Origin: Haliotis rubra
Taxonomy: Eukaryota
Direction of reading: 5' to 3'
NCBI RefSeq assembly: GCF_003918875.1
Contig: NW_025766026.1
Location: forward strand, 62,001 to 126,000
Length of the DNA stretch: 64,000 nt
Position 1 is the first letter of the stretch. The number at the start of each line of letters is the position of its first letter. Of the stretch, positions 24,986 through 58,700 are shown piece after piece. The position numbers were made by a program, and so were the translations under genes. The notes beneath the pieces are model-generated. The model made no database searches and was not told the origin of the DNA. It saw nothing but the letters and a program-made list of their open reading frames with translations.

Positions 24986-26688
24986 AGTAACTTGTTTTAT
25001 AGAGATTTACTGCGTACGTCGTAAACCAATCATTAAAAGGGTAAACACATAAAATATGACCTAATTGATGACGTTTTCCAATTTACTGCAAAAAAACTAA
25101 ATACAATCATTGTTTTTACAAATCATGTTCTAGCTGTTATACAAGGCAGCACATCGTCGACATGCAACATCTGTATTTAGATATACAACGTCCCGACTAA
25201 AGTATACCCAGTCACGAATATCCTCAGAAAGAGATACATTCGATTTGACGCAACCAAACAATCAAGTGATCGATGGACCAAATAATTCAGTTGTAAATAT
25301 GCAATAAGTTTTGTTCCAACATATTTACACAGATCTACTACAGGACTATAGTTATACAGTAATCTCTGCTGCTCACGTGGCCCACGTCCCCGTTGAGAAT
25401 AGACGCCGTTTGTTAAAAGTATCTGCCCGGCTTACATCCAGCGCTTATACTCTTGAAGACGAGAGACTCAAACTGAGATGAAATCATTGTCGGAGTTTGC
25501 ATGTCGATTGTGTCTGTTTTCAGATGCATGTGAAACATAAATCATGTTTGTGTAATATCAAAATGTATTATTGATACCGGTTTTTACCAGCTGTGAAGAA
25601 ATCCATAACAATTGAGTATCGAATGAGTGCAAATATAAAAATCCAAGTTGCATAACACATGTAAATATCAGCTTTCCTTCAGAGCCTGTGAAATGTGCAG
25701 CCACTCGGCGCAACCTTGACCTTTCAAACAAAACTTTCATTCAGCAGAAATGTAAACGTGTATTATTCTCCATGAAGAGGACGGTCGATGTGTTATTTGT
25801 ATTATTTCGAATAGGAAAACGTCCAGTTTTGAAGTATAATCCTAGACACCTGAAAATCTGCATTCCGAAATGTTAAATTCCTGAGTTAAGTGGCCTTTTT
25901 GTCACCCACCTCGTGTTTTGGCCAGCCTTTTCTGAACATTTATCCTTACCAGAAGTTTGCGTGATTTCAGCTGATTAGATCTGCAATTCTACAATAACCA
26001 CTGCATTCAATGAACTCACTACCAACACCTATATACTCCACATACCTCGTGAAATGTCCGGCCGTTCACATGAATATAAAAATTTAAATTGGATATTTTC
26101 TCTGTCTAGTTACCATATGAGTAATCACGTAAGTTAGATGTGTCGGACATCAAACTTTTGAACTAGTACCTTGGCCTTGCTCCGAGGTTTTACTGAATGC
26201 TGAGCCCATGGATGCATAGGCGGATCCAGAATTATTTTTAAATGACCATTGAAACTCGGGTGAAAATGAAATGTGCACCTTCCCTTTTCTCAATAATATG
26301 CACCCCCCTTTCTAAAAAACCTGTATCCGCCCCTGGGATGTATAGTATCCGAAGAGGACCTCAGTCTGTTTTCTTATTATTTTTGAGAAATTATCATTTA
26401 AACTATTAATGTTCACCGTAGAGACTACATGTGCAACTCTACTAGTGCCTTGTATTATACTACGTTAGCATGTCGGCAAGTGCAATCTATACAGACACGT
26501 CCGTTCTATTAATAGATCGTTTTCCAAGAAGCCAACTTTCTCTTTCACAGAAATGGCACGAATAATGCCAGAGTATTGATTCACAGTGTATTGATGCACT
26601 CCAAGTACAAAACAGATCTTCAAAGATGTTATCGTGTAATAGATTTGTTGTTGCTATAAAAAACCCTTTCAGATGATATATTGCAAAC

Positions 26689-35300: not shown

Positions 35301-35749
35301 TTCTGGTGTCCCCAACCGTGTTATTGCTGGAATATTGCTAAAAGCGGCGTAAAATTATACTGACTCGCTCACTTGTATCTTGCTGAGAAAGTTCTTCAAA
35401 GGGTTTTTTAACGCGGGAACTCCTTGAAGTGACGTAATGAAAAAGGCGGCGTTCGAAGTATGTAGAGGATTTACATTAGTCATTGCGAGATCAGTCTGGG
35501 AATTTTTACTAGTTAGCTCAGTTCGAGTTTATGGTGTGAAACGTACTCTATTAATATAGCCGTACCGAAAACACTGTCGCCATTGGTGTAGAAGACAGTA
35601 ACAGTGGGTTCACTTTTGTCACAGCGCTTATGAAACTCTTCGATCTGATTGTGGTACTGGGAACTGTCAAACAGGATCTTGAACTTATGGCTCTCCCCAA
35701 GCCACTCCTTCAGCATTTCCTGGCACAGGGGGTTGAATGACATCGACAT
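29324..35749 (-). CDS. IFI44L: IFI44/IFI44L-like protein, gene C (~460 aa), 7 coding exons
   Basis: Exons 35749-35566, 35133-34786, 33467-33412, 33140-32958, 30861-30715, 30203-30008, 29592-29324 are GT-AG and phase-compatible (1383 nt). G1 GQIGAGKS, G3 LWDTRG, IHCVAFVIDG, G4 LTKID, VKNYEQE. Confidence 0.9.
29737..29903 (+). mobile_element. tRNA-derived SINE family 1 copy
   Basis: ggggcggtgggtagcctagtggttaaagcg...actaaactcactcattcac. Confidence 0.88.
31455..32870. mobile_element. Non-autonomous element with ~150 bp terminal hairpin (Crypton-like, tentative)
   Basis: Near-perfect palindrome 31459-31607 (gaataaccaacgagg...cctcgttggttattc) around gccgagccttggcgaggc; internal degenerate ORF 32102-32524. 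Family assignment and right boundary are inferences. Confidence 0.5.
33960..34390. mobile_element. MITE with long (~170 bp) inverted arms
   Basis: gagatcggtgaagaaatgaattt pairs with aaattcatttcttcaccgatctc; ttatgattaacat pairs with atgttaatcataa. Confidence 0.75.
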
Positions 35750-38524: not shown

Positions 38525-39918
38525 AGAATGTTTCAGAGTTTGTCTTTGATGACATGAGAGGTGCCTTGAAGTAGGACGTAGAGGTTTTATCCATATGGTC
38601 GTGTATCCATTACTATCCCCTGTGACAAGGAAGGTAGCTGACATTACAGAAATCCAATTTCCACCCTTGTCGATGTAGGCTATAGGTTCTGAGTTATATT
38701 TTGTCTTGCATAGTGAGTCCATGGCGTGTGCCGCCAATTGTCGGCCGACTTTTCCAAATGTTCATTATCAAACCAACGTGCTCGTGTGAATTGATGCATT
38801 TCGCTGTGTAAAAATATAATTACAATATTGATTTTGATTATCGATCGGATCATCTTGACGGCATTTTGTTTGAAGTGGTGCAGTTGGAGGTGATGAGAGG
38901 CAGAATCTGATTGGTCAACATACGGGCCATGGAAGGGCCATAATAGCCATTTGTGACGCTACGATCGAGGCGAAATGAAATTCAGCACAAATCGGCAATG
39001 ATAGAAAACGGACTGTCGTCAAACTCCTTGCTATAGAAAGATGATCCATCTATACATAGGTTACATGTTATATCGCCGTAACAATCCTGCTTACATTATC
39101 TCCTATATCTATTCAACACAGTCATTTGTCACACAATTGGTAAATAGTCTGAGTCTGATTCCAGTCCCTGAAGATCATGAGAGCATCGTCCTACGCAAAT
39201 GGGATAAGATGGCATGTGTCAACCAAGTCAGCAAGCCCGACCATCCGATCCGTTATTGCCTTTTACGACAAAGAATGGGTTAGTGAAAGACCAAGTCGAA
39301 CCCGGATCTTCACGGGCCTTACCTGTCGAAGTACATGTAGTTTCATTTTAGGGTTTGGGTTTAAAAGTATATGGAGAGTATCTGTCTCTTGTTTTGTCGT
39401 GACATGTCCATTTTTCCAGGTCTCGATGTAGGATGTAAGTGTTATTTTCTCACATGAGCTTGTATGATCTTACTCTGAAAGCTATAGTCTTGTTGGGTTT
39501 GTAAGTATTCCTACTTTAAAGTGTGATTTAACTGGAGAAATTTCAGTTGTTTATTCAGAATTTCATCACAAAATACACAATAAATTACACATATATTGTG
39601 CCTTGTTTACGCCGCCATGTTTCTAGCTATGAGAACAGTAGCCTGTAAATAACTGTGTAACTCCAATGACACCTGCGTCCACCCTATTATATCCCTTTAT
39701 CACAAGGTAATAATAAGAATTACTTTAAGTTATTATTTTGGACATCTTACTGTACTCAAGCCTGAATCATGTCACCTATCTAAACGCTTCTTCCCAAGGA
39801 CAGAGTTTCCATTTAAGCTTCATGCAAGACTAGACTTGACTTTAATTGTATCTAGTAAACATACTTGGCTCAGAGATATGCCTAACGTACACGTGGCATA
39901 ATATTACCTATAATTGCC

Positions 39919-39940
39919 CTACTTTCGGTTTTTCGTTTCA
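39919..39940 (-). promoter_or_regulatory. IRF/ISRE-like motif upstream of gene C
   Basis: Minus strand TGAAACGAAAAACCGAAAGTAG: tandem GAAA cores, near-identical to 52116-52134. Confidence 0.5.
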
Positions 39941-41300
39941 GTGCAGTTTACTTAGATTATACCTTTGCTGAAAATGATATAAAAATATATAAATATGAAC
40001 ACCTAAATATGATTATCCACCCTGTTGAAACAATACTATATCCTCACAACAGCCACGATTGAAGTATTATTGCTTTTATTTCTGAACTACAGACATATAT
40101 AAAAGGATACATTTGCACTAGAAATCATTCAGTGTTATTACAACCAATACATGTGTCAATAGATAGTTCGATAGATGTGTCAATAGATAGTTCGATAGAA
40201 GATTCATACCTGGAGTATCGTAACTATACGTACCACTTACCGTTATTTTACAGCAGGGGAACATGACAGATCTAGCGGGACACACAGTGATGTACATACA
40301 CCACGAGCAGCTGATTGTGAGAATTGACATCAAGGGGAGACAACTCGTGTAGCTATTTAACGGCTTGGGGTCATGATGACCCAGGTGTAGTTGAGTGATT
40401 GACGGATATGTACAACTCCGACCGAAAACACACGTTTTCCATAAGTTTGTGTGTTTTTACATGTATAATACCGATTTTTGTCATTTGTGAAATTAGCTCT
40501 AAAGGTTACAATAGGGAAATATGTACTTTCCCAAGTTTACAATGACCTGTATGATGCCATGTAATTAATATTATAACAGCAAATGAACAACCACAAGCTT
40601 ACTTACTTATGTCGAGTGAGTGGGTATGGTTTTACGCCGCCTTTAGCAACATTCCAGCACCAGAAATGGGCTTCATGTAAACTATGTGGGGAATAAAACG
40701 CAGGTCATCGGCGTGACGAGCGAACGCTTAAACCCTTGGCTACCCTACCTCCCCGACTAGTCTCGATCATTTGTATAGTCCGGAACCCTTCCAAACTGTT
40801 ACGCTCCATATACAATGGGGCACAACATCGTTTCCGTAATCAACACATTGTTAAATTTCTGATGACTTTTGCGGGGAAGAATATTCCCCTTGGTTAGAAA
40901 CAGAATACATCATCAGCCGCTAAAATACACTGTTTTAATAAGAGGAATGTGTGTACTGAATCATACAAATAAACAGTTTAGGGTTAATAGACATGTGCTG
41001 AAACTAATTCATTCGAGCCTTATCCCCTTTTCGCAACAGAATGAAATTTCAGTAAAGGTTCTAATGACTCACAATTAACTACGATAGTAAGAATGTTATA
41101 TGTGATATATATGCCAATATTATTATAGCAAGCGTAACGTGTTCGTGTACCGTTAGATGGAGGACAGTACCATGAGCAACTGCTACAAGACATAAGGCAA
41201 GCATAAAACTGTTAAAATATTAAAATGTTCTCACTTCTAGTCTTCTAGTAAGCATCATTCACAGGTCAAAGGATGCACACACTCGGGAACGGTATACATT

Positions 41301-44300
41301 TCAGTTATCATTTTGATCGACATGATAATACAGATAATCATCTGCCAGACGCAGAATCTGTTGGAGACTCAGCAGAGCTGGAACATCCACGCGTACATCA
41401 AGTTCTGTTTCCTTCTCATAGTTCTTGATTGGCAGAACACAGCTCCGCGGGATACCAAACATCTGGGCAACCGTGTCAACGAGATCAGACACGGTGATGG
41501 TTTTGAAGAGACCCGACAAGTCTTTGTCCAGAACAGGACAGACCTTGTCCACCTTGGTCAGCAGAACAACCTGAGGCACACCTGCACGAAGTACAGAAAA
41601 GAGGGTGTTATGCAAATTGCTGACACTTCAGGAATGAGTGAATGTGTTTGGTTTAACGCGTCTTCTAATACTGTTTCAGCTACACCACGGTATGCCAGCT
41701 TCATGTAGGATGAAAATCAGGAGGTCCTGGACGTTTACCGCTTAAGTGAACACCACAAGTACGGAGGTCTTGGACGTTTACCGCTTAAGTGAACACCACG
41801 AGTACGGATATCTTGGACGTTTACCGCTTAAGTGAACACCACGAGTACGGAGATCTTGGACGTTTACCGCTTAAGTGAACACCACGAGTACGGCGGTCTT
41901 GGACGTTTGCTGCTTAAGTGAACAGCACGAAGTACGGAGGTTTCTTGACGTGTACGAGTGCGGAGGTCTGGTGTACCGCAAAAGTGAACACCACGATTAC
42001 CTAGTGCGTGGACGTTTACCGCTTAAATGAACATCAAGAGTACGGAGAGCTTGGACGTTTTACGCTCAAGTGAACACCACGAGTACAGAGTGCTTAGACG
42101 TTTACTGCTTAAATGAACACCACGAGTACGGAGGTCTTGGACGTTTACCGCTTAAGTGAAAACCACGAGTACGAAGGTCTTGGACGTTTGCTGCTTAAGT
42201 GAACATCACGAGTACGGAGTGCTTGGACGTTTACCACTCAAATGAACATCAAGAGTACGGAGGTCTTGGACGTTTGCCGCTTAAGTGAAAACCACGAGTA
42301 CGGAGTGCTTGGACGTTTGCTGCTTAAATGAACACCACGAGTACGGAGGTCTTGGACGTTTGCTGCTTAAGTGAAAACCACGAGTACGGAGGTCTTGGAC
42401 GTGTACTGCTTAAGTGAAAACCACGAGTACGGAGAGCTTGGACGTTTGCCGTTAAAATGCCAGGATTTTTATCGGGGACAACCAGGATTCGAAAACAAAT
42501 ATTTGGTTTCTGTCGTGCCTAGTGGGACGTAATTCTGCAGATCTGCTGCGTCTTACACGACTAACTCATCGATTACCCTGACTCCCTATTCAAACCAGTC
42601 AAAGTGGCACAGTGGCACATGTCCATCCCGAACGTACCGATCTCCTTATACAGAAATAATACATACCAGCATGTCATATTTCAGATCATTTTAACATTTC
42701 TTTCACACAAAGTGCGAAATGTGTGAAATAAGACATCATTATGAACATCTAAAATGTGTGAAATAAACATCATTATGAACATCTAAATGTGTCAATCAAT
42801 AATAGCGAAAGTCCAGAACAGTGTCACAAGAGAAGGTACATATCGTTCTGACAATAATATGATTCACTTAACAGCTTGCTATTATATTCCAATTCCTGCC
42901 TTGATTCTACCAATAGCGTGCGTCACACGTCAGATCAAGTAAACTAACGCTGGCGGCGGAGGGTAGCTGAATGGATAACCACGCTCAGAAGGCGTGACTT
43001 GCATCTAATTCTTTAGTCGCGTTCCATACTGATGATGAAGCATATCTGTGGTTTCTTAGATTTGTTCGAATAACCCTTTCACAAAGCAGCTAAAAGCATC
43101 TGAGACTGTGATGACAACTTGGGTATGCTACCCCGATTGACGATCATGAGAAGATTTTTTTTAATACTTTTTTGAGGGAACACTGCCATCTTGATATTTT
43201 TTGCAACACTGCTACAACACACATTTTACGCATACATTATTTTACAATGGTTATCTGGTCTACAATACCTCGAGCATTTGCAGATTCCTGAAACTCTTTC
43301 ACAACCTCTAGGATCTTGTCCGAAAATACGTCCACAGTAGAGGCGTCAACGACGAACACAACACAGTGAGCTGTGTCTTCAAAAGATGGAGATTTCCTGT
43401 AGCCTCTTGTCTCTGGACCCAACTTGGTTAATGGGTTAAACTGAATACAAAAATTATACTTGCACCTAGTGCAGCAATCAAGCTCCTAATGGTAAAGTGA
43501 TTGCAGCTCGGGTTGATAATATGTTCTTGCGGTAAAGGGTCCGATGAAGATTCAGATAAAGAAGAACAATACCTCTATGGATAGCCCTAGTCCTGACTAG
43601 TATCGCCAACAATCGCCTGCATCCAGTGGGGTGGATGTAAATCATACAGAGGTACAGTGCATGTAACAGATGTACAGTAAATCCCCTATCCTCCGCGTAT
43701 AGTTTGTTCTCATAACGTTCACAATGGTTTCAGGTACAAATCCGTGACATGTTACCAGAGATATTTCTATGGAAGCGTAGTAGTGCCACAAACAAAAGAA
43801 GAGCATCTGCGTAGATGATACTTGAATCTATTCTTTTATATTACAACGCTGATAGTTGGACAATTTGAAATGATTTCACTTAGGTGCAAAAGTATCCCAA
43901 AAGGACAAATAGAAATCAACAATCAACATGTTGCCAAATATAATAATACTATATATGTTTGTACTATATGCTTCAAGGGTCTCAACTTCCCAATGAAATT
44001 ATCATCTGTGTTGATCTCTTGTACACAGATGAAAGTACCTGCTACGTGAATGAAAGTATTTTCGATGTAAATGTAATTATACGTATCGTCTACGTATATG
44101 GAAGTATCTTCTACATAGAGCTAAATATCATCAAAGTAGATATTTCTTTAGACTCTGGCAATAGCTTTATAAATTACTGTTCCTTTGCGCCAGGTTAATA
44201 AAGTGCAGCATGTTCTAGTCAAAATGTGGCTGAAATGATGCTGAAGTGACCCCAAACGTCAACTCACTCACTCAGTTACACAAAGCGTACTAATACACAA

Positions 44301-47300
44301 CCTGAAATCCATTCTCAACGTGTCCATCGAGAAATGCCACCAGATCCTCGGGCTTCATCCCATTGTCCCCCTTCAATCCTCGTGTGTCACACAGACGGAA
44401 CTTCAGCGGCGTGCCAGACTTCGACCTCACTTTGTAAACCTTGAACTATGTAATTCGGAAAACATAATGGACCTACGAAGAACACCGAAAAGCAAGCATT
44501 GGTCATCCTCGAAAATCTCCAGGGTATATGTTCCGATAAATCTCCACTATACCCTGGTTGCATCTACAGCTCGGCCCGATGATTTTATTACCTCCCTTGG
44601 CTAGCTTTTACCCAATCGGGTGTCTACGCTGGGAAGGTGAGCTTACAAATCACAACTTTCGCTTCTTAAATAATCTAACCGATTAAACTTGGCAATACAA
44701 ATTATGCAGAGGTACTCTGAAAGAGGAAGAGGAGTTCTTGCATATATATTTTTAACGTTTCGGACCTGTCAATTTGTCTGTATAATTTCTCCAAACATCT
44801 GAGTCGCACTGCGCACAAACCTTCGCGGCTGCGATCGCTATTTTGTTGACACTGGCAAGCTCGGTTGTAACGGCGGCTTAGCCGATAGGCTACTGTGAGA
44901 ATGCGGGCCAGAAAAGGGAGGTAATAAAATTATCGGGCCAAGCCGTATGTGCAACCAAAGTATAGTGGAGATTTATCGTAACGTATACCCTGGAGATTAT
45001 AGAGGATGAGCATTGGTGTGTACATAGTCGCTTTACAAACTATAGCATAAAGTTTCACATGAATACGGTTTCACTCTGCTGCAAGCAGTGGTCAGAATTG
45101 TAATAGTGTTAACTGTCAAATCTTGGATGAATTTTCCAAACCAGTGATTGAAATAATGAGCAACGATCCCCGGCATCGGGAAACTACCTACGATCTGTGT
45201 TTCAACTTACATGACAAGAACAGGTTAACCAAGATATCAGATCTACATGGAGTTACCATGGGTAAATTCAAATGACAAAATGAAGTTTCCTACATTCCTC
45301 TGATAAAAACCTTCATTCATTCATCATTGTAATTTTATATTTCTGCATTCACTGTTACGGAGCAAAGGCTCTCGGGTACCACAGAGTCAAGAACTGAGCA
45401 TTTGAATTTAATATTTTATATTACAGATTCAATAAAAGTTGAAATCCCTCCTGACCCCAACAAAGTTAAAAGAACAAATCTTCTCACAGTTACTTACAGT
45501 CCAACTTTAGAGAGAATTTCTATCTAATCTGTCTGTAGGCATGTAAAAGTAGTTATTGAGCTATCAAAACAATAACATGGACTTGAAATTAGTAAATTCT
45601 ACTTCTATGTCAGGCATACACCAATATCAAACTCAAAGGAAAAAACACAATTTTTATAAGTCTGCAAATAGCGAAAGCCACCACGTCGGAATCTGTTTGA
45701 TATATCAGCCATGTTTTGTTGAAAGATATTGAATGGTTTTCAAGTTGTGCTCCGGAAACGAAGTGATTACGGACGGACGGACAGAGAGACAGACAGACGA
45801 GGCGTTGACTATATCTCCCCGCAATTTTAATTGATTTCTACCTTTTCTACTATTATAAAAAGAATAGTTTCTTCATTCATATGTCGAACATACGGTAGTC
45901 TCGAAGCAAAACTTGTTCCCTGCATATTTAACATTTTGCGGTTGTTTTGGCCCTCGGATAAATCAAAATGTTTGCATATGTCCCTCAACTTCGACAGAGC
46001 ATTGTCCGCAAATCTGCAACTGATTTCTTAAATACGTACCCCTTGCGTGAGACTGTGTGTGGTACTACCACTCCTCGCCTGACCAGTCACGTGACCTTTG
46101 AACATTGAGTTGATGGTGTTGAAATAGCTCGATTTGCCACTTCCTACTGCACCCACAAGCAACAGATTGACATGGTCCAGTTTCGCCTCTTCCACGGGAC
46201 AGTATCTCTCAAGTTGTGTCATCAACTTCTGGTTAACATATTGCGATAATGTACCTCAATCCACGTGCACAATATAGTTATTAAGCTATATATATATAAT
46301 TATTTCAACATCAATTTTTTCGCAAATGGTGGCTGACCTGTAAAACTCCCGTGAATAATTCTGAAAAACTTGAAGTAGGCATGTACATGAATATGTTTAT
46401 GTACAGTGAAACCGTACATGTGATTAGCGACATTAACAATCTCGTGGGATCTCGTGGAATCTCGTAGACTGGGATAGAGACATAATGTAACAATAGCAGA
46501 TGAGTGTCTTTAAGGCATATACTAACCCCGTGGTCTGCATTGCCGATGTTTCGCCACGGATCATCGAACTCCACATTTGCGTCTTCAGCAAGAAAAAGAA
46601 CAAACAGATAAGAATATAGAAAAACATTTTCGGCATGTGTTTCGATGTCTACGTTAACAATGATTATGAGGGTTTCCTGTCTATTAGAGGCGGTGGGGTT
46701 GCCTAGTGGTTAAAGCGTTCGCCGAAGACCGGGTTCGATTCCCCACATGGCTACAATGTGAAGCCCATTTCTGGGGTCCCCCGCCGTGATATTGCTGGAG
46801 TAAAATAAAATAAAACAAACTCACTCATCCCTGTCTGTTTTAGTGCTGTGTGTATCATAATGTGTTCAAATCCCGATTCCATGTTTCGAAAACTATCATT
46901 CCTAATAAAATTGGATAGCGCAAGCAGCCATATATAAGGCAAGATATGGGGTAACTGAAAAAACAATCGATCACGCACAGGAAAATTCCCTTTTGCAATC
47001 TGCAAATCTTAAGAAAAAGGTTCATTTGCTGTCCACAGAATTGTCAAATAATAATGTGCACCAAGGTAAGGTTGGGATTTCAAAACCAACATTACTAGTA
47101 TGCTATTGTTATTAGTTTATTAGCGTAAGTACCAAACCGAAACATGAGTCATCAACCTATTCAGACATTTACCTACCTTTCAACCCATCCGAAGTTTCTC
47201 GTGTGAAAGTGAAAAGAGACACAACAAACAACTATGGTTACACGTAATTCCAATTCCTTCTTTCATAAGAAAGGGCATTTACAAATTTTAATTTTAAACT

Positions 47301-48784
47301 ATAAAACAATCGTATTTCTGTTTGATGAGGTCGTAAAATGATTCATAATTCATCTGGCTCACTGGTTACACTTGTTGTGTCTTCTTTGGACTAAGAAAAC
47401 TGTTCAGTCAGTGTTGAAGCGTTCAGTTGAGTTGTTAATGAACATTGAGATAATATATCATTTACAGTATATTAGTTATCCATTTTCACAAATTCATTTT
47501 GAATTGGTGTTAACTGTTTAATAAATGTGTTGAACAGATCTTGATTTGGTTTCTCTGTTCATAAGTATTGACTTTACCTCTATTGGTAGTTGGAAAAAGT
47601 AAGTGAACAATTTGACATGACAGACACTATATTCTATCTGGCCAAATACCTCATCTAGCTTGTTTTTAATGCCAAGATTATTTTTATAAAGAAAAATACT
47701 GAGATTTGGATGTCAACCCCATAGGATATGTTGAATTAACTCCATGTATTGCAGCGTTCATTTTACTGAAACGAATTTTATTCTAGAAAAAACTTACTTC
47801 TACCTCTGTCAGTTCAACGCACACGCACACGCACACTCACGCCATCCCAACCCCTACCTCACACACATCTTTACTCGCACCAACTCACACACGCGCGCGC
47901 ACAAACACACGGTTGAAATAGTATTGTCTTCAAGACATCAAGAACCTGACACCCCTAGGTAAAAAAGAAATGGTGGAACACTCCACTCCAACGAGACAGT
48001 TCAAGAAGACAAACTAAACATGCTATTAGACATGCTGTCATTAATTTTGGTTTTGATGACAAATCTAATCGATGGGTTTTCTGAACTGCGCTTATTCAAA
48101 ATTTTATTTCCTACAAAACATTTCAACTCTTCTGGATGGATTCATCCGAATGATTTTTACTCACATTCCTGGACAACATTGACTGTTGAATGTGAAAGTA
48201 TATGCATTATTATCTAGTTATTGTTTCAGTTATTGTTTCCTCAACGTCCCCTTACCTTGGACCTTGTAAACATCAATTGCCGACAGCTCGAGATCATTCC
48301 CTGTGAAATCTGTTGCTGTGTCGCCAGCCATGTCATAGTCCGCCCCGTGTTTACTTGCTGTTTTACATGGGAAAAACCCATCTTTCTTCTGATAAGGACC
48401 CTCATTTAAAAAAAGTAGGTCTTCACCAAAATAAGGACCACAAGATGATTTCTGGCATATCGCCCTTTTTTCGTGTTCATCTTTTAGCCTGTACTTCTTG
48501 GGTTGAAAAGATCCATCTCTGTCAAGCCTGAAGAGAAATGCTCTGTCATCGTAGGAATAAGAAGACGACGTTACACCCCAGCTTACATTGGTGTAGCCTC
48601 CAAACACCCATCCAGCGGTATTACGTGCAACCGTCACAGTTGCTCCTAAGTTGTCACATTTGGAGTGGAATGCAGAGGCTCCACATTCATCAGTTGCAGT
48701 GCTGTAGAGGAGTTTGAACTGTTTGTTTCCTCCCAGCCAAGTGGACAATTGTTTCCGATGAGACGACGACAGATGTGAAGTCAT
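41301..48784 (-). CDS. IFI44L: IFI44/IFI44L-like protein, gene D (~456 aa), 6 coding exons
   Basis: Exons 48784-48256, 46582-46527, 46228-46040, 44445-44302, 43440-43269, 41581-41301 (1371 nt). Exon sizes 56/189/172/281 are identical to gene A. G1 GAVGSGKS, G3 LCDTRG, G4 LTKVD. Confidence 0.92.
41720..42455. repeat. 43-bp minisatellite, roughly 17 copies, in the last intron of gene D
   Basis: Unit ggaggtcttggacgtttaccgcttaagtgaacaccacgagtac. Confidence 0.93.
44500..45012. mobile_element. MITE with ~100 bp TIRs
   Basis: tcatcctcgaaaatctccagggtata...ttattacctccct pairs with agggaggtaataa...tataccctggagattatagaggatga. Confidence 0.85.
46689..46828 (+). mobile_element. tRNA-derived SINE family 1 copy
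   Basis: A/B boxes and cacatgg...aagcccatttctgg body. Confidence 0.85.
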
Positions 48785-49127
48785 GTTTTCGACAGTTTAC
48801 TGCGCGTATAGCAGGACCTGTGGATCATACATAACAACAGCTTTGAAACTCAAAAAAAGGTAATCATCATTGTCTCAGGGCGTAGATATACACCGCAATA
48901 AAGCTTGTGATTTACTAACTATTGAACTCTTCTCAGTAAGTTTAAATTCTGTTATTCTTTCTCTTGAGGTATACATGATATCTAAACCATGCACTAGTAC
49001 AGTTTTAAATAGCCCCTGGGATGTACATTACATTATTAATATGCGGTGAAACCATCAGCAGTTAAATATATAAAGAGAGACGGTTAAATAGCTCTACAGC
49101 ATGGTCTGACGTTTGGTGTGACAGGAT

Positions 49128-50148
49128 GGTGTCCTCCCATTTCGCAGACAGCCAGTTCGCAGACACCTTAAAACAACAACATTTACGGTTCAGTGAACAG
49201 AGTATCTACTACCTGTTACCTACACATTATAATGGAATAGTCCAAATAAAAACACAGGAACAAACTGAAGCTAGGTTATTTATTTTGAAAGATGGACTAA
49301 AAGACAGTTATTTGAATTTTTATTGCTGCAATATTAAAACAGTTTATTTTTATAAACATTTCAGTTTAACCTTCTAGTCTAACGCGAGTCGGCATCATCA
49401 TATTGAAAACATTAGCTTAGCTATTAGAAATTGCGACACGGTTGTATCATATAAATCAAAAAGACACATGTGAACCTAAATATTATTCATAAGGAATAAA
49501 GAAGTTATGTGTTTTGCACACAATATTAAGATACAAGACAAGCCCACTTAATTACGATTTATTTAAGACGCATCATGTGAATGTGGCCATGGATGTGAGA
49601 ATGTTTTTCATTACTTCCTTGAATGTCCATTGTATACTACCCAAAGACATAAACTGTTACAATCTTTAGAAAGTATTGTTAAAATTAGAACACTGATTGG
49701 TATTAATCTGATCTTACATGGCAATGCAGGTGTTTCATTTACTGCAAATCAGAATGTTTTCAAATATGTACAGATCTATATCTCTCCAACAAAACGTTTT
49801 CTCAGTTAACTTCTGTTGTACATATCCTATTATTGGGAGGGGTCTTTTCTATCAATTAACACAATCAAACCTCTCAATGACAAAGCTGGGTTTTTTTTAA
49901 TTTTTGATAGTAATTGATAGTAAAATCAATTTGAGAAGACAAATCATTTATAATTTAATCATAACCAAGTTCTATTTACCCACAATCAAACTGCTCAGTA
50001 ACGAACCTGTTTCAGGCTTACCCTGCTCTACTCACTAGACAGTGGACTGTTCCATTATACCCGTAGGTGTTACCCTCATTAACCTTCCAGTTCAGTGTCT
50101 GTCAAATGGGTGTCTGATAACTGGGTGTCTGTCAATTGGGAGATAACC
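49128..50148. mobile_element. Non-autonomous DNA transposon with 8-bp TSD
   Basis: TSD gacaggat on both sides; imperfect TIRs ggtgtcctcccat / ttgggagataacc with subterminal cagaca repeats. Confidence 0.7.
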
Positions 50149-50299
50149 GACAGGATATCTCGATTTAATTAACAACTGACAAGATTCACACTGTACGTAA
50201 ATCAGCATAGCGCTGTATCTATTAATCCTTACACTTAAAAGAACATCGTCATTTAAATACATCACATTGTTAATACTGTATGTGCATAATTCAACATTT

Positions 50300-50868
50300 A
50301 TCCCGGTGTCAGGGGTTTTCGACGATGTAAGACAAAAACGTATTTTTTATCTGTAATATCATTTAAAGTTTGTATTTTTCTAACCTTGAGTGATAAAGGA
50401 TATATTCATCTACTTCACACAAACATATCAAGTGTTCCGCTCGTAACATCCGGGTATTTTGTATGGGATTTCGACGATGACAAATACTTTTTGCTCCGCA
50501 CTGCGAGGGAGTGTTGTGATCACGTGGCTTCCTATTTATATATTGCCTGTCACCAGCAGACGACTGATCTTACTGAATTTTCGCTTGCTATTATTTGTTA
50601 TAAAGGCAACTGATTTTGCATCTGAAGTGGTATTAAATGATCTCGGGTAAATAATATTGATGTTTGTTTGCTTTTTATATAACTTTACTTCCGGATTTCC
50701 ATTGTCAATAAAACTTCTCACGACAGCGACTGGGCACCCGCCCTACCAGTGAAACTGCTTGTGCACTCCGATTGCACACGTATTCCCCCGATATAGCGCG
50801 TGCAATGCAATCGTCGAAATCACCAGAACGTCGAATCCAGCTCGTGTTGGGATATAATATGTATTATC
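50300..50868 (-). mobile_element. Dispersed repeat, copy 2 (inverted relative to 2740-3255)
   Basis: ccgccctaccagtgaaactg...aatcgtcgaaatcaccagaac. Confidence 0.85.
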
Positions 50869-52115
50869 ACTTAAAAATCACTTACGTTATTAATCAACAA
50901 TACAAACTAAATACGTTTGGTTGAGATTATAGGTCTGAGTTCCAAGAAGGAACAGACGTGTACATGTTAGGTGTTCTCTCGTGTTGTCATTCAAAAGAAT
51001 GCTGTAAACATAATTTAACGATTTTACTATTTTTTGTGTTGTTTTTTGTGTGTGTGTTTTGTACAAGGCGTTTTGAAGTGTGGTACAAAGATTTGTGAGT
51101 TCACATATATAAAACTGGTATTCAGAGGATGCACAGTGTCGGGAGTTTTGCTGACATATTTAGACATAAACACCTGACGTTGTGTTGTATCCTAATGTGT
51201 TGTACTATTGACGTTTACTGACCATAACATCATACAGGGGCCTGCAGGTTCATCTCAAATGGTGTCCATAATATCCCAATTCTGGAAGTTTCGGGATAAT
51301 ATGAAAACAAATGAGACAAAATATAACATGAAGCAATTGGTCAAGTTGCTGGTTGGCCTAACGATACTAGCCACCGCCAACAAACTCCTAACATGCACAA
51401 GCGCGCATTACTAAACCACAGGTAACCCAGTCCTGTCGACCCTCAATGATAGGAAGAAACATACTATTATTGTGATGATAACATCATGTCCACATTATCG
51501 TGTAGCCTGGCCATAACAGGTCTTAGTAGTAGGACAACATCATTTCTGTTAAAAATTCAGAAAAAGGCTAATAGATAGGTATTAACATTCTTCTTTCTTT
51601 ACATTTTATTATCAATACACTGTCATATATTGTCATCATAATCGTAATCACTGTCTATATGTTGTTAAAGAGAATATTTCTAATGACCGAGGTGTCTAAG
51701 TTTGTGAGAGTAACATCTGATTCGATCTATGTTGATGTTCCCTGCTTCGATGTTTCTTTCCTATTCTCTGATGATCTTGTTGCAGCGCTGTCTCTGTTAT
51801 GGATTCAAAATCGTCAAATTTAACAACATATGATTTTGCTATATACATTTGTTATTTCCCGAATACAAAAGAAAATAGAATAAATAGCGTTCTTAAGAGA
51901 GGTCTTTTCTTCTCTTCCAGATGCAGATTCTACATACCCACTCATAAACAAGCAAAATAAAGCAGATGTAAAGTTACAGATATTGTTTCATTTTTTATAT
52001 ACTGTTTTTCATTTTAAACCGACCGTCCCTACATTAGATCACGGTGTCTACGTGAAACACATTAAATTAAAATGCCGCCCTTATCTAATGGGCCCGACAG
52101 TATTAGTTGGTAATG

Positions 52116-52134
52116 CTACTTTCGGTTTCGTTTC
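52116..52134 (-). promoter_or_regulatory. ISRE-like motif upstream of gene D
   Basis: Minus strand GAAACGAAACCGAAAGTAG fits the GAAANNGAAA IRF consensus with three GAAA cores. Confidence 0.55.
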
Positions 52135-52226
52135 TAACATCAGACACATAGACATCGATAGTATTCGGCACCCAGCTTTTGTCCTGAAAGTTTATTACAT
52201 GACAATTGAAATTCTCGTGAAAACGG

Positions 52227-52399
52227 NNNNNNNNNNNNNNNNNNNNNNNNNNNNNNNNNNNNNNNNNNNNNNNNNNNNNNNNNNNNNNNNNNNNNNNNNN
52301 NNNNNNNNNNNNNNNNNNNNNNNNNNNNNNNNNNNNNNNNNNNNNNNNNNNNNNNNNNNNNNNNNNNNNNNNNNNNNNNNNNNNNNNNNNNNNNNNNNN
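52227..52399. other. Assembly gap
   Basis: Run of N. Confidence 1.
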
Positions 52400-52993
52400 G
52401 CAGTGTGTATGCAGGATAATGACGCCATCTGACCAACAAAAACATACAAACGTCCTTCACTGACCTTACAGGGTAATGGACTCTCGAAGCTATTTCCTCT
52501 TTGTCTCGCTTAATCATATCTCGCTTAATCTTTATAAAGAGAGCTAACTCTATGAAGCAAGTGTCAGTCGATGCAGAATCGTAACGCGCTCTCACACCTG
52601 AGATCGAATCGCGTGACAAACATTTGTTGTCAACATTTACGGTTGCTGCACATGAAGGTGATATGTTGCATATGATTACCACAATATCGGGAATGTTTCC
52701 CCTCAGAATAAATATGAAAATTGGAATGAACTTGTAAAGAAATACATTTTGCTGATGCTCAGTGGGGAAACTACATGGTCTTTGGTATCTTTCATGACGT
52801 GTCTCATATATTTACTGTTATTATTCCTTTGCTTTAACGTTTCATCTGTTTTGCAGTACAGGTGAAGATGAACAGAACAGTATGTCTACAGCGTACGAAC
52901 AGTCCCATTTCTATTTCGAATATCTAAGCCAAAGCCGGTTAGTTGGAAACATTTTCAAGACTCATGTAATTAGAAAGTAAGTGAGTGAGTCAA

Positions 52994-53024
<31 letters not shown>

Positions 53025-53504: not shown

Positions 53505-55005
53505 CTAGGCACATAAAGAAACCGTGCTTACAAAAATTTAAAATCTAAATTTATCAAACCTGTGTAGACACATAAGGATTTAAACTTAGAGATTAGTGAC
53601 ATGTATCCAACATGCATGCACGTGCCACGTTCCGTGACGTCAGTGGGTTCGTCCTTGAGACGTGCAATACGTTGTTGCACGTGCATTCCGGGAAAGAGAA
53701 ACAGAGCAAATGAATGCCACACAATACTGTCACTTTGGAAAGCTCAACCCCTGTCCTTGCGATCATTCAAACAATTAAACGGCTATTGCAACGCATAGCA
53801 TGCCAAGGCTCACGTCTGCACAACGTCATGAGGCCATAGGGATAGTCCGTGGGGGAATGTCTCAACGACAAGTGGCTGCACATTTCCACTGCCACCGGAA
53901 CACCATTTCTGCACTGGTGAGACGCTACCAGAATCACAAATGACGTCATCGATCGGCCACGTTCTGGACGTCCACGTGTAACAACGCCAAGACAGGACAG
54001 ATGGATAAGGGTGACCCATCTTCGCCACAGGTTTCAGACTGCAGTGATGACTGCCCGAACCATCCCAGAACTTCGCCGTATCCACCCCAACACAGTTCGA
54101 CAACGTTTACGTCATCACAGGATCAGACCACAACGTCCCGCCATACGGCCTATCCTGACACAACGTCATCGACAAGCTCGCCGAATGTGGTGCCGAAATC
54201 ATGTCCGCAGACCCTTGTTTTAGTGGAGAAATGTTGTTTTTATAGATGAGTCCAGGTTTAACATTTCCCATAGTGATGGATGTCAACGTACCTATAGACG
54301 CGTGGGAGAACGTTATGCACAGGCTTGTGTCTTGGAGAGGAATCGCTTTGGTGGTGGTTCCGTGATGATTTGGGGTGGAATAACAGCACGCCAAAGAACT
54401 CCTTTGGTGATTGTTCAGGGGCAACTTAACTGGTGTGGGCTACAGGGATCAGATTCTTCGACCTGTGGCAATGCAACGTCATGGCCCTGGGTTAACCTTC
54501 CAACAGGACAATGCCCGCCCTCATACGGCAAGGGTTGCTATGGATTTCTTGCAACACCACAACGTTGACTTACTGCCTTGGCCTGCAAATTCACCGGCTC
54601 TCTGCCTGATAGAGCATGTGTGGGACGAGATGGATCGACGTCTACGCCGTCTTCCTCATCCGCCAGATAACGTCCTTGACCTTGCTACAGAACTTGAGAG
54701 AATCTGGCGTGACATCCCACAAGCCTTCCTTGCACGTTTGATAGGCTCTATGCGTCGTCGATACACTGCTGTTCTCAATGCCGATGGTGGACATACCCGT
54801 TATTGAGCTTGTGACATGGTCGTTTGACCACTGTCCCGCTTGTGGACTCGTGACGTCATTGTGATTGACTTTTCAATTGAAATTCTCCAGACTTGTTATG
54901 GTCTCATGATCCCTCCATTAAAGTTTATATGTACCTTTGACATTGTTATCGTACTTATCAACTGGGATAATATTTTGACAATGCACAGTTTCTTTATGTG
55001 GCTAG
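53505..55005 (+). mobile_element. Tc1-like transposon, near full length, transposase disrupted
   Basis: TIRs ctaggcacataaagaaaccgtgc / gcacagtttctttatgtggctag with TA on both sides. Transposase ~53800-54806 with MPRL start, DESRF, GGGSVMIWG, FQQDNARPH, WPANSP..IEHVW, GGHTRY; contains frameshifts and stops. Confidence 0.92.
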
Positions 55006-55717
55006 TATCTGATGTGGATTCAATTGCTTTGCTTGGAAAACCTTTTCTTAAATACATTATTATAAAGAAAGAAGAAGGTGACCTGTGTACCGGTGTACTT
55101 GTTTAGCATATCGGGGCATCCTATTTTCACAGCGGGCAGAAGATTGAGATATATGGACACTTTATATTAACAACAGGAACTGTCATAGGATAGTAGGTTA
55201 ATCAAACCGATTCTTTATTAAGAAATGACTGCAAATATCAGTACATGTGGCAATCATGCCTAATTACATAGCAGTTGATAGCTAGTGCTCCATACCTCTA
55301 GGAACCGTCAAACCTTCAGTCAGACGAAGAGGCATGCTAGTTTATACACAGACAATGAATTGTTTAAGTCAATCTGAATTTATGACAGGAATCAGGACTG
55401 ACACGCATGCACGTGTGAGGCGCTACTCCATGTGCAAACTACGTACTTGGGCGTTAGGTTTTAGGCACATAGATGTTCGTGCATAGGCTTTCTTCGTTTA
55501 CAATCATATATTTTATGTTCCGATATAATTTATAGCACATGACAGCCAACATGTAAATGACAAAAATTGAATACATTGAACCAAGTGCTATAAAATCATT
55601 TCACTCTCTCTTTCTCTCTGAACTTGCTTCTCATTGCACAGCAGCTTTCTGAACTTCATAAGTGACATTCAAAATTTCCATTTTGAGCACGAAAATGTCT
55701 TTGAGTATAACTATAGG

Positions 55718-58700
55718 CTAAATTCGCCTCCAGTTGATGAAGAACATAGTGGCCATTGTAGAAACCAGCAGATAGATGTTGGCAGCACAGGATTCTCCCT
55801 TGTCTGAAACTGTAAAGATACATTACAGGAAGCATACTGGACTTCGACCACGAATAGAAATACACTGAAACCTCGTTGGTCCAGAAACTCCTCATTTGGA
55901 CGCTTACATGTTAGAGTGAGTTTGGCTTTTAGCTATAGTCAAGCAATATCACAGCGGGGGACACCAGAAATGGACTTCACACATTGTACCTATATGGGGA
56001 ATCGGGTCTTCGGCGTAAACGAACGCTTTAACCACTAGGATATCCCTACGCCCTCCTTACATGTAAGAACGTCTACATAAATCACAGTATAAAAATCATT
56101 TTTATCATAAACTGAGCCATCACGAGTTATCTCCCTTTATGATCGTTAACGATAAATCATGGCCAAACGTTTTGCGTCTCATTCTGCAGAAGATTAAATG
56201 TTGGTTTTCAAAGATAAGCTAAATAAAGTGATCTTAAGGTCTGCACCTCAGGAAATACGGAATTTACAAGGGTCTTACAGTTCGTACACCCTGTCAAAAC
56301 ACCGTGTAACTAATAATGTCTGGACCCCATGCTATATACATCCTGCACAATGTGCACAGCATGAGTGAATGAGTTTAGTTTTAGTTTTAGCTATGTGGCG
56401 GCGGGCTGTAAATAATCGAGTCTGGACCAGACAATCCAGGGATCAACAGCATGAGCATTGGTCTACGCAGTTGGGATACGATGGCATGTGTCAACCATGT
56501 CAGCGAGCCTGACCACCCGATCCAGTTAGTGGTCTCTTAAGACAAGCATGGGTTACTGAAGATCAATTCTAGCCCGGATCTTCACGGGAAGTGCACAACG
56601 TGACGAAACTAATGAAGAACTAATATTTAAAAAATGTCTGTTCACAATTGTTCCAAATTATACGTTATCCATTAAGGATTTTTTGTATTAAAATCTATTC
56701 TGATCAAGAAAAAGGTCAACAGTAATAACTTCAAGCATTACAAGAAATAACTGTAAAAAACAATATGAAGTCTGTGGCATCGTACAGCCTGTTATCAGAG
56801 AGTTTTCAACACGTTAGTGGCATTGCCTGTGTTTAGTTATGTGAACAAAAACGCAAGATATTTTATTAGCCAATCTAATGAGATGTAATCACTTCCAATG
56901 TATCTATCAAATCATAATCCTTAAAATACATTACGTACCAGGTTCACAGGTGGACTGTCCGAAGTATGGGGGGCAGGCTGAAAAAGTGCACGTGTTTTAA
57001 AACAATAGTTCTTCTGAAGGAAAGAACTAACTGATATTCACACAGTTATTTTAGACATTATTATGCCAGTCATAATTCTCTTCCGTTAAATAAAATTCAA
57101 ATTCAAATCAGACATCTCCCTGACGCATGTTTGAGTGGTTCCACATTAATGGTTTTGAACTTGAAATGGACTTTCACACATTCTAATGTGATATCTGGAA
57201 TCAAGAATAACTTTATTCGTGGTTTCAGTATAAAAGTACTTTGTGGTTAACGAGGTACAGTTCAAATTTTAAAAATAATTCTTGTGCTCCGACATACCCG
57301 TGGACCCACAGATCATTGTAACGATCGCTTCAAGTAGAGCCAAATACCAAGTGAGTGAGTGAGTTTGGTGAAGTGTTTGACATTGAAATGTTACCATTTT
57401 TATGTGACGTCAGTAGGAATGCTGCAGGGTTCACACACAACATTTGTACGACGGTATTGGAACGGGACTGTAGCCTTGGAGCCAGAGTCTGGCGGCGGCT
57501 CCACACGGTTGATCTAGCAGATACACACTGGCTGTTGTTCACCTCCAAACATCCATACATGACGGCAAAGCCGCTGTAGTCTGTGTCCACCACCCAGTAG
57601 GGATATTGGTCTGAAATGACAACACCAGCAATATATGCAATATACCATGAGGATGAAGGTCAGGTTTGCTGGTCTGACTTGGGGTAGTGCTGGTTGTTTT
57701 CATATACAGGGCCCAGATTTTCGAAGCTCTCTGATCGCTAAGATAGTCGTAAGTGCCATACATTAACATTAACTTACGACGATCTTAGCGCTAAGAGAGC
57801 TTCGAAATTCAAGGTCCAGCTACGTACTTGACATAACTAGTTCATAAAGGATGACATTGTTTTACAAGGAAAGAAGAAGGTATAAGAAACATCTTTCCTG
57901 AAAGCGTAGGGAGTTTTCTGCTTGTCTACAGCTTATTTAGGCGCAATATTTAGTTCCGAATAACTCATCCTACATGTCATTAGGTCATTTTATTGTTCAC
58001 ATAATTATATATGACTCCCTCTTCATGCCGTAAATTGTCATAGGAGTATGTTGATACGTGTTCATAACGCAATATTCACCCCACCATTGCTGTCTTTTAC
58101 TTTGAGTGTAAACTTCCCCGGAGTTTCTAATGGTTCCATAATGGCCTCCCTGTAGAAACATCCTTGCTTGTTCCTGAAAAAGAGAGCGATAATTGAATCT
58201 GGTCTCGATTTATACAAGAGAATCGTTCCCCAAGGTAAGTGTTGTATTAAGTCCAGTATATAGAAATTCTCACCAGAGTGTCTTTTGATATCAATTATAT
58301 CAACACGGGTTGATAAAGTTACAAATATCCGAAGCTTGCCGAGGATTTTTACTTTTATCAAAGAGTGATGATATATTTGATACCAGATGACACGAGGGTG
58401 AGATTCTATTTATCATAAAAAATCAATTAATCTTCATTAGTTTTCAATGAAAATGAACAACTAACGTGCCATTAAACGTGCAGTGCAGCGTGTCATAGCA
58501 TTGTGACGTCATCGTGTTTTTTACGTCATAGCATTGTGACGCATGTAATTTATGACGCCAGGGCATAGTACAAAGTCTACTGTCAACATGATATCTCCTA
58601 GGGGATATCGTTTGATCTCACACAAGCAATATCTCCATTGGAACACAGCTTGGGATGATAAATAGAGAATCTCACAATTGTCTTCTGATATCAATAATAT

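Follow-up and report, generated by a model that had tools for sequence, protein, structure and literature searches.

An ISRE-like 19-base word beside IFI44-like genes and other antiviral-type genes of the abalone Haliotis rubra

Molluscs mount an interferon-like antiviral response, and the DNA elements that wire this response are, to our knowledge, almost unknown. A stretch of 64,000 nucleotides of the Haliotis rubra genome (RefSeq assembly GCF_003918875.1, contig NW_025766026.1, positions 62,001 to 126,000 of the forward strand; hereafter, the window) carries the IFI44-like genes A to D, and a preliminary description of it proposed that C and D share an IRF-driven control element. Is the shared motif a control element, and is it the kind of site that an IRF would read?

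Genes A to D are assigned to the IFI44-like genes, which combine an N-terminal TLDc domain with a C-terminal GTPase-like region and have full-length similarity to IFI44/IFI44L. (Pfam TLD matches the first coding exons of A, C, and D, and there was no match for the TLDc ORF of B.) The exons of gene D map to 41304-48819 on the minus strand. D is 97% identical to "interferon-induced protein 44-like [Haliotis rubra]", and its 456-amino-acid orthologue P0001, which is named IFI44-like, can be aligned along 98% of its length to teleost IFI44-like at 37-38% identity. The first coding exon of D (48256-48819, minus strand, ATG at 48784) encodes the TLDc domain (Pfam TLD, E = 7e-16). Gene C lies at 29330-35748 on the minus strand, and its first coding exon (35565-35748) is preceded by the acceptor gcag; as had been claimed, an acceptor-like site precedes the first coding exon of each of the four genes.

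The word at genes C and D

Genes B, C, and D are on the minus strand, and read on that strand, the D site (52116-52134) is the exact 19-mer GAAACGAAACCGAAAGTAG and the C site (39919-39939) is GAAACGAAAAACCGAAAGTAG, which is the 19-mer with an insertion of AA (the plus-strand readings are ctactttcggtttcgtttc and ctactttcggtttttcgtttc, respectively). The two near-identical strings, their common orientation, and their distances from the start codons (3.3 kb for D and 4.2 kb for C, whose ATG is at ~35748) are all as first described. The insertion at the C site is polymorphic: the other haplotype, present as a haplotig (contig C824), carries the exact 19-mer.

The flanks of the two sites had been called unrelated, and this holds. 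MAFFT leaves the two motifs unaligned to each other, and BLAST between the surroundings of the C site and those of the D site finds 13-19 nt in common and nothing more. The 360 nt around the C site are single-copy in the genome. The D site lies within a unique gap of ~80 nt with interspersed repeat on either side, and an unfilled assembly gap (52227-52399) begins 93 nt upstream of it. The preliminary description had named a common repeat as an origin that would undo its reading, and neither of the two sites is a repeat copy.

The 19-mer contains three GAAA cores, of which the last two form a canonical dimer site, A-AC-GAAA-CC-GAAA-GT. The IRF consensus is AANNGAAA and the dimer ISRE is A/GNNGAAANNGAAA with a 2-bp spacer (PMC5861432); GAAACGAAACCGAAAGTAG matches both the half-site consensus and the 2-bp-spaced dimer site. 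The window's allele of the C site, with its insertion, retains just AAAA-CC-GAAA. Potential readers are encoded in the genome, as IRF DNA-binding domains (PF00605) score above the cut-off at two loci (C2384 and C935). Against an IRF reading, a degenerate IRF site would not call for identity at all 19 positions.

Single GAAANNGAAA sites had also been reported near A and B and in an intron of D, and they are indeed present (1683-1692, 26537-26546, and 47205-47214). The window holds 10 such sites, compared to an expectation of 3.9 ± 2.1, and 1 of 100 shuffles gets to 10. Conservation in Haliotis asinina bears out the site near B and not the other two. The B site (GAAAGAGAAAGT, 26535-26546, minus strand) is 4.1 kb upstream of the ATG of gene B; its H. 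asinina orthologue is GAAACAGAAAGT, which matches at 11 of 12 positions with the sole change at an N position, and beyond it come a perfect run of 30 nt and ~200 nt at ~92% identity. The A site (GAAACCGAAA, 1683-1692, minus strand) is on the strand opposite to gene A. Its region could not be aligned to H. asinina, and there is no ISRE-like site within 10 kb upstream of the A orthologue. The intronic site in gene D (GAAAGTGAAA, 47205-47214, plus strand) falls in no conserved block, and a scan of the H. asinina locus with the ISRE pattern gave no counterpart. Both of these sites are probably due to chance.

Occurrence and conservation of the word

The exact 19-mer occurs four times, and once more with the AA insertion, in the 1.38 Gb genome. 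Once haplotig C824 is removed, there are three independent exact loci, and the reversed control has none. These loci are the IFI44-like genes C and D and a RIG-I-like receptor gene. With up to 2 mismatches allowed, the control has 27 matches, from which we estimate that ~0.02 exact copies would be expected by chance, as against the 3 independent copies observed, so a chance origin of the 19-mer is excluded. This enrichment, which had been proposed as a check against genomic background, is seen for the exact word (3 loci versus 0) but not for its 13-mer core (75 occurrences versus 71 in the control). Similarly, allowing up to 3 mismatches gives 401 matches to the word versus 471 to the control, so variants of the word are not enriched in bulk across the genome by either measure. 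The triple-GAAA architecture GAAANGAAANNGAAAGT occurs 99 times, versus 54 for its control.

The third exact copy (C835:62065-62083) precedes the first candidate coding ORF of the RIG-I-like receptor by ~4.8 kb and the exon with DECH helicase motif I by 6.7 kb; the exon for the RIG-I C-terminal domain of this helicase gene is at C835:75996. At two more of the nine loci with a RIG-I_C-RD domain (C57 and C821), a variant with at most 2 mismatches precedes the C-RD exon by 16-17 kb, with the relative orientation unchanged. By calculation, we would have expected close variants at ~0.007 loci instead of at 3 of 9. The word is absent from the other six RIG-I_C-RD loci and from both IRF loci.

Two other kinds of genes have a near-identical variant of the word nearby. 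Eight TRIM-NHL copies form a tandem cluster in which GAAGAGAAACCGAAAGTAG precedes the ATG of the RING exon by ~0.7 kb; immediately downstream of this site are a TATA-like box and a splice donor. The other variant, GAAACGAAAGCGAAAGTAG, is separated by 1.1 kb from a gene that encodes Macro and Deltex-C domains. (Except for the test of RIG-I-like receptors, these gene associations are post hoc.) The word is in the sense orientation at the IFI44-like and TRIM genes and antisense at the RIG-I-like and Macro/Deltex genes. It is absent from most IFI44-like genes, including the other paralogues on the contig, C1668, and two paralogues in H. cracherodii.

The H. asinina counterpart of the C site is identical to the 19-mer (19/19) and is embedded in a perfect run of 34 nt, which ranks third in length among 2340 non-coding runs when the insertion-free allele is used for scoring. 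The TRIM site is also conserved at 19/19, and the orthologue of the D site, AAAATAAAACCGAAAGTAG, matches at 16/19 with the 3' 13-mer intact. Together with the B site, these sites stand out from a background identity of 72-80%, which points to purifying selection relative to their flanks. Changes between the species are confined to spacer positions or to the first GAAA unit.

Position relative to transcription starts

Gene D is expressed and spliced in four small runs that are probably RNA. Transcript contigs of 2.5 kb from three of the runs cover exactly the 48256-48819 exon span; the match stops exactly at the acceptor (48819), and 43-70 extra bases continue on the 5' side. These extra bases have no placement within 46228-52227. 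(The intron at 46583-48255 has GT..AG ends.) As this 5' non-coding exon was not located in the interval from the motif to the ATG exon, the start that was used in those samples probably does not lie downstream of the D site. So, the earlier statement that the motif lies upstream of both genes does not seem to hold for D: the non-coding first exon is apparently beyond the motif, and the D site probably falls within intron 1, at ~0.4 kb past D's likely start. Our best candidate for the promoter and non-coding exon 1 of D is a unique conserved block directly upstream of the assembly gap (52400-53000, minus strand). This block is single-copy in the genome and has 86% column identity to H. asinina, versus ~72-80% elsewhere. 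It contains a TATA box (52538-52530), an ISRE-like GAAATAGAAATGG (52917-52905), and a CRE-like ACGTCA (~52800).

The C site lies between D's 3' end and C. The 3'UTR of gene D is at least 1026-1062 nt according to the transcript contigs, and the sole AATAAA past that point, which is likely its poly(A) signal, is at 40075-40080 (minus strand), 135 nt upstream of the C site. This places the C site ~115 nt past the inferred cleavage site of D. A TATA-like TTATAGG (39907-39913, minus strand) starts 6 nt after the C site; H. asinina has TTTAAAGG there. It is followed by an E-box, CACGTG (39895-39890), and then by a conserved AGGCATATCTCTGA (39883-39870). TTATAGG may act as a promoter element, and C's start probably follows shortly after the C site.

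What the word may do

The word stands unaltered beside three antiviral-type genes and persists in another species of abalone, so it very probably serves as a genuine control element for a set of antiviral genes. More specifically, we predict that the 19-mer is a functional cis-regulatory element of the ISRE, or IRF-binding, type, and we would put the probability of this at about 60%. The "conserved IRF-driven control element" of the preliminary description is thus upheld as regards a non-random, non-repeat, conserved site that matches the IRF-dimer ISRE in a genome with IRF genes; that an IRF drives it is our prediction. Its phrase "no recognised classical interferon" should be qualified, since there is a report of an interferon-like protein in oyster (PMC8218723).

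Under the proposed mechanism, sensing of a virus would lead an abalone IRF to bind the word as a dimer or as a higher-order complex. The bound IRF would raise transcription of the IFI44-like genes C and D, at least one RIG-I-like receptor, the TRIM-NHL cluster, and the Macro/Deltex gene, and induction of the RIG-I-like receptor would amount to positive feedback. By analogy with oyster, the upstream signal might arrive via RIG-I-like receptor/MAVS or via cGAS/STING-TBK1.

Another possibility, which we consider rather unlikely, is that the word is a real regulatory element that is read by another factor, such as a PRDM1/Blimp-1-type repressor, a STAT-IRF composite, or a lineage-specific zinc-finger protein that recognises a long word. 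All 19 positions are exact at three unrelated loci, which is beyond the need of a degenerate IRF half-site, and the trailing GTAG(G) is retained at many variant sites. Also, PRDM1 competes at PRDI/ISRE sites, and GAAAG sites are common to the Blimp-1-type repressors and the IRFs. However, the core follows the textbook pattern of an ISRE with a 2-bp spacer (PMC5861432), the neighbouring genes belong to classic IRF/ISGF3 target families, and substitutions between the species fall where IRF sites predict that they should. We regard action at the RNA level, for instance by an intronic or UTR element, as very improbable. The probable location of the D site in intron 1 and the proximity of the C site to D's 3' end would suit it, but the word occurs in both orientations relative to its neighbours, which fits a DNA element and not an RNA one.

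The word could also lack a role in the host. That it is a neutral A/G-rich string that recurs and has not yet decayed would accord with the background frequency of its 13-mer core, with the chance-like A and intronic D sites, and with perfect runs of at least 23 nt not being rare (25 in ~12 kb of interspecies alignments). This is hard to reconcile with the three independent exact copies, the 3 of 9 RIG-I-like loci, and independent conservation at four orthologous sites in H. asinina, so we give it little credence. A little less implausible, and still improbable, is that the word is a fragment of a mobile or virus-like element that was carried by a repeat, for instance by the promoter module associated with Maverick-like ORFs, was dropped beside these genes, and has little or no host function. 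There are four copies of a variant, GAAACGAAAGTGAAAGTAG, on C2256 and one on C2422, and a site on C808, next to polB-like and A32-like ATPase ORFs, shares homology with these copies that spans the motif. PolB fragments flank the C57 and C821 sites as well. Homology beyond the motif was found only for this separate variant (on C2256, C2422, and C808): the C, D, and RIG-I-like receptor sites do not show the many copies or the shared surroundings of a repeat, and a search for flank homology among the three gave none. Their similarity breaks off precisely where the 19-mer does, and the flanks show no decaying homology; also, the surroundings of the C site are single-copy. Moreover, the C, D, B, and TRIM sites are orthologous in H. 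asinina and better conserved than their surroundings.

A related variant of the word is found within a repeated element that adjoins Maverick-like ORFs. Endogenous retroviruses seeded IRF-responsive switches in mammalian host genes. A speculative extension of the ISRE reading, which we think is unlikely as a whole, is that a composite ISRE word, fixed at 19 nt, is the mark of an antiviral regulon in abalone that consists of the IFI44-like, RIG-I-like, TRIM-NHL, and Macro/Deltex genes, that a sister variant is part of an ISRE-E-box-CRE-TATA promoter module in a repeated unit beside Maverick/Polinton-like ORFs, and that such elements either seeded host IRF switches or exploit the host's IRF response to express themselves.

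The vertebrate ISRE (IRF-E) occurs in the promoters of IFI44, RIG-I/DDX58, TRIM, and PARP9-DTX3L, and the abalone word likewise adjoins IFI44-like, RIG-I-like receptor, TRIM, and Macro/Deltex genes. The two have the same core (A/GNNGAAANNGAAA) and the same 2-bp spacing of half-sites (PMC5861432). The vertebrate element works in either orientation, as the abalone word, to judge from the placement of its sites, would too. In contrast to the vertebrate ISRE, the abalone element is fixed over 19 nt and includes a third GAAA unit, spaced by 1 bp; owing to non-coding first exons, its distance from the first coding exon is 0.7-5 kb. Also, our analysis recognised no type I interferon, STAT2, or IRF9 by sequence in abalone.

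Among invertebrates, the closest case is in shrimp, where LvIRF binds an ISRE in the 5'UTR of Vago4, as proven for this single gene by EMSA and a reporter (PMC4602278). There, an endogenous ISRE that is read by an IRF lies downstream of the start of an antiviral gene, as the D site probably does. The Vago4 site has wet-lab proof, whereas the abalone word is a candidate that extends to several gene families and is conserved across species. In oyster, CgIRF2 and CgIRF8 activate human ISRE and IFN-beta reporters (PMC5557890), there is a cGAS/STING-TBK1-IRF axis (PMC8218723), and IFI44 is induced by virus (PMC7460283). Molluscan IRFs recognise ISRE-type DNA, and the upstream pathway is present in molluscs. 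Unlike the mammalian reporter elements of the oyster IRF studies, the abalone word is an endogenous candidate, and in the literature that we searched, we found no endogenous molluscan ISRE that is common to a gene set.

A short, exactly defined, conserved endogenous element that is common to several antiviral families would be a concrete handle on this response. It could be built into abalone- or oyster-native reporters or used, with ATAC-seq and CAGE, to define an IRF regulon by motif, and it bears on whether ISRE logic predates interferon itself. As abalone herpesvirus is a problem in aquaculture, markers of inducible antiviral capacity would be of practical use. The AA-insertion allele of the C site is a natural variant that lends itself to studies of allele-specific expression.

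Two loci of one word among the IFI44-like genes

Genes A to D are IFI44-like; in A, C, and D, the first coding exon carries a TLDc domain. In the public protein set, the orthologue of gene D shares 97% identity with it and goes by the name "interferon-induced protein 44-like [Haliotis rubra]"; against fish IFI44-like proteins, its identity is 37-38% over the whole length. (Exon maps are from exon-by-exon searches, and full-length comparisons used database proteins.)

Both shared motifs were read directly from the window, with an exact match to the coordinates in the preliminary description: GAAACGAAAAACCGAAAGTAG at the C site (39939-39919, minus strand) and GAAACGAAACCGAAAGTAG at the D site (52134-52116, minus strand). 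Their flanks had been described as looking unrelated, and global and local alignments of the C and D flanks bear this out, as the homology ends with the motif. Similarity also ceases at the edges of the word when the C, D, and C835 loci are compared (C835 being the contig with a third exact copy).

Across the 1.38 Gb assembly there are four exact copies of the 19-mer and one with an AA insertion, and the reversed control has no exact matches. Two of these copies are on C824, which is the other haplotype, as its identity to the window is 97-99% along 3 kb. With haplotig copies removed, there are three independent exact loci: the C site, the D site, and C835:62065-62083. The AA insertion lies within the C-site motif of the window (39926-39929) and changes the canonical GAAA-CC-GAAA spacing to AAAA-CC-GAAA. 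Because the gene-C site on C824 (L001, C824:59957-59975) is an exact 19-mer, the insertion is a polymorphism, and because H. asinina has the insertion-free form, the allele in the window is derived. It may be a weaker site.

The cluster on this contig (C1136) comprises about eleven IFI44-like genes over about 210 kb, and the 19-mer is found only at C and D. Pattern searches by coordinate found no copy at the other IFI44-like genes (C1136 positions 6313, 40002, 144104, 154895, 168926, 179835, and 207854 outside the window, and a further gene at C1668:2439809), at six RIG-I-like loci, or at both IRF loci. The word is thus an element of a subset and is not family-wide.

Other copies and their conservation

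The exact C835 copy is followed downstream, on the plus strand, by DECH-box helicase exons and an exon for the RIG-I C-terminal regulatory domain (C835:75996), which places it upstream of a RIG-I-like receptor gene, at about 4.8 kb from the first candidate coding ORF. The genome has nine loci with this C-terminal domain (RIG-I_C-RD). Beyond C835, two of them (on C57 and C821) have a variant of the word with up to two mismatches, 16-17 kb upstream of the C-RD exon and in the same relative orientation. Given 52 such matches genome-wide, about 0.007 would be expected in nine 20-kb windows.

Two further associations were noticed post hoc. First, a genome search found eight copies of GAAGAGAAACCGAAAGTAG on C2146, C2208, and C1580, each on the strand of a RING-B-box-NHL (TRIM-like) gene and about 0.7 kb upstream of its ATG. 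(The tandem cluster on C2146 is at 1051700-1071599, L034/L035.) Each copy precedes a TATA-like box and a splice donor; an acceptor lies directly before the ATG exon. A non-coding first exon is predicted between the motif variant and the ATG exon in these genes. In abalones, the RING-B-box-NHL family has expanded greatly: H. rufescens, H. cracherodii, and H. asinina have dozens of proteins at 60-75% identity. Second, on C2289, a one-mismatch copy, GAAACGAAAGCGAAAGTAG, has a gene 1.1 kb away (C2289:2427493-2430435, which is L039:1194-4136) that combines a Macro domain with a Deltex C-terminal domain and so recalls the vertebrate PARP9/DTX3L pair.

We compared orthologous loci in H. asinina, where non-coding blocks are 72-80% identical and much of the region is unalignable. 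At the C site, H. asinina keeps the 19-mer unchanged within a perfect run of 34 nt, which ranks third in length among 2340 non-coding runs when the insertion-free allele is used for scoring. The TRIM site is conserved at 19/19 positions, 2.6 kb upstream of the ATG. The D site is conserved at 16/19, with an intact 3' AAACCGAAAGTAG and a decayed first GAAA unit. The word is absent from two H. cracherodii IFI44-like paralogues and from a TRIM relative.

The weaker single sites that had been proposed as IRF elements fared unequally. At the B site (26535-26546, minus strand), GAAAGAGAAAGT becomes GAAACAGAAAGT in H. asinina, a change at an N position. The B site is followed by a 30-nt perfect run and then by about 200 nt of about 92% identity, up to a conserved splice-donor-like GT; judged by sequence, this stretch looks like a core promoter and exon 1. 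The A site (1683-1692, minus strand) did not hold up, as H. asinina has no alignable orthologue and no ISRE-like site in the 10 kb upstream, and neither did the intronic D site (47205-47214, plus strand), which is not conserved in H. asinina. H. asinina also lacks a DDE-transposase remnant (54411-54806) and a 1.1-kb insertion (49043-50174), and positions 55330-57630 align with the 3' portion of a gene with a lipocalin domain that is annotated upstream of the H. asinina D orthologue (L049:1-5759).

Candidate readers of the word

The best reading, to which we give a probability of about 0.6, is that the word is a putative antiviral switch read by an IRF. The 19-mer includes an IRF dimer site with 2-bp spacing, which is canonical (PMC5861432), and two loci in the genome code for IRF DNA-binding domains. 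Oyster IRFs switch on ISRE reporters (PMC5557890), and viruses induce oyster IFI44 (PMC7460283). The word belongs to an already known kind of element; in the literature that we searched, we found no report of an endogenous ISRE common to molluscan antiviral genes. That a different factor reads the same word is unlikely, and a role at the RNA level is very improbable.

It seems quite unlikely that the word is a fragment of a mobile element without host function. A common repeat had been named beforehand as a possible source of the motifs, and the C and D sites both proved not to be repeat copies. In a genome search, a 360-nt stretch around the C site has a single copy, and the D site is within a unique stretch of about 80 nt whose neighbors are an old repeat (51900-52085) and a high-copy repeat (52165-52226). 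On the other side, GAAACGAAAGTGAAAGTAG (C2256:142575-142593, L036/L037; C2256:98988, 215997, and 231723; and C2422:296413) and the C808 site (C808:76780-76798, L008) belong to one repeated element. Its order is GAAACGAAAGTGAAAGTAG, CACGTG, TTACGTCA, and an TATAAAAG box. The word is at the head of an E-box/CRE/TATA module that appears promoter-like. Maverick/Polinton-like ORFs adjoin it (a polB-like ORF with no Pfam match, a weak, sub-cut-off match to the poxvirus A32 ATPase, and SAP/Rho_N repeats). Chance we consider improbable, as only about 0.02 exact 19-mers are expected (derived from the 27 control matches at up to two mismatches). The enrichment against background that had been suggested as a check is absent for the bulk word: genome-wide, the 13-mer core has 75 matches vs. 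71 for the control, and the word at up to three mismatches has 401 vs. 471. It is present for the near-exact neighborhood (up to two mismatches; 52 vs. 27, with part of these being tandem and haplotig copies) and for the triple-GAAA architecture (99 vs. 54), which alone stand out among these counts.

Starts of genes C and D

For gene C, the site is likely to be promoter-proximal, judging from its surroundings. Six nt after it there is a TATA-like box, then an E-box and a conserved block. The 3'UTR of gene D is at least 1026-1062 nt in transcript contigs and the sole AATAAA past that point is at 40080-40075, so the gene D transcript probably ends about 115 nt before the C site.

Gene D had been guessed to have a non-coding first exon, and transcript contigs indeed continue 27-70 nt 5' of the acceptor. 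In four small, probably RNA, runs, 2.5-kb contigs match 48256-48819 exactly, up to the acceptor, with 43, 55, or 70 extra 5' bases (the contig of the fourth run is shorter, at 358 nt, and has 27). Hence, gene D is expressed and spliced, with a non-coding first exon. The extra 5' piece had no placement in 46228-52227, where pieces of 36-56 nt did place, and depth was zero in bins 50228-51827 in the run with the longest 5' extension, which puts exon 1 beyond 52227. A search for the gene D 5'UTR found no Logan-derived protein in the cluster of H. rubra proteins P0001 and P0151.

An assembly N gap (52227-52399) is directly followed by a non-coding, single-copy block (52400-53000) with 86% column identity to H. 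asinina, well above its surroundings. This block contains a TATA box (52538-52530), a CRE-like ACGTCA, and an ISRE-like GAAATAGAAATGG (52917-52905) that is conserved in H. asinina, with T to C at an N position. It is the best candidate for, and probably is, the promoter and exon 1 of gene D. If so, the D 19-mer falls in intron 1, about 0.4 kb past the start. The D motif, described as upstream of its gene, is 5' of the ATG and would be downstream of the candidate start. An IRF-bound ISRE downstream of the start has a precedent in shrimp (PMC4602278).

Two other candidates near gene D were rejected. A read-depth peak at 52028-52227 was considered as an exon beside the D motif and is accounted for by the high-copy repeat. 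A block of about 500 nt that is common to the upstream regions of A (2765-3254, plus strand) and D (50844-50300, minus strand) was considered as a conserved promoter. It is 87-92% identical whereas the A and D proteins are only about 42% identical, which marks it as a young interspersed repeat. Transcript contigs of low depth reach this block. Transcript contigs also join a 56-nt exon (46527-46582), missing from the protein-based exon map, to 48256. A further "opposite strands" joint (46527/46692), possibly an artefact of assembly, lies in a repeat with high expression (depth >30,000).
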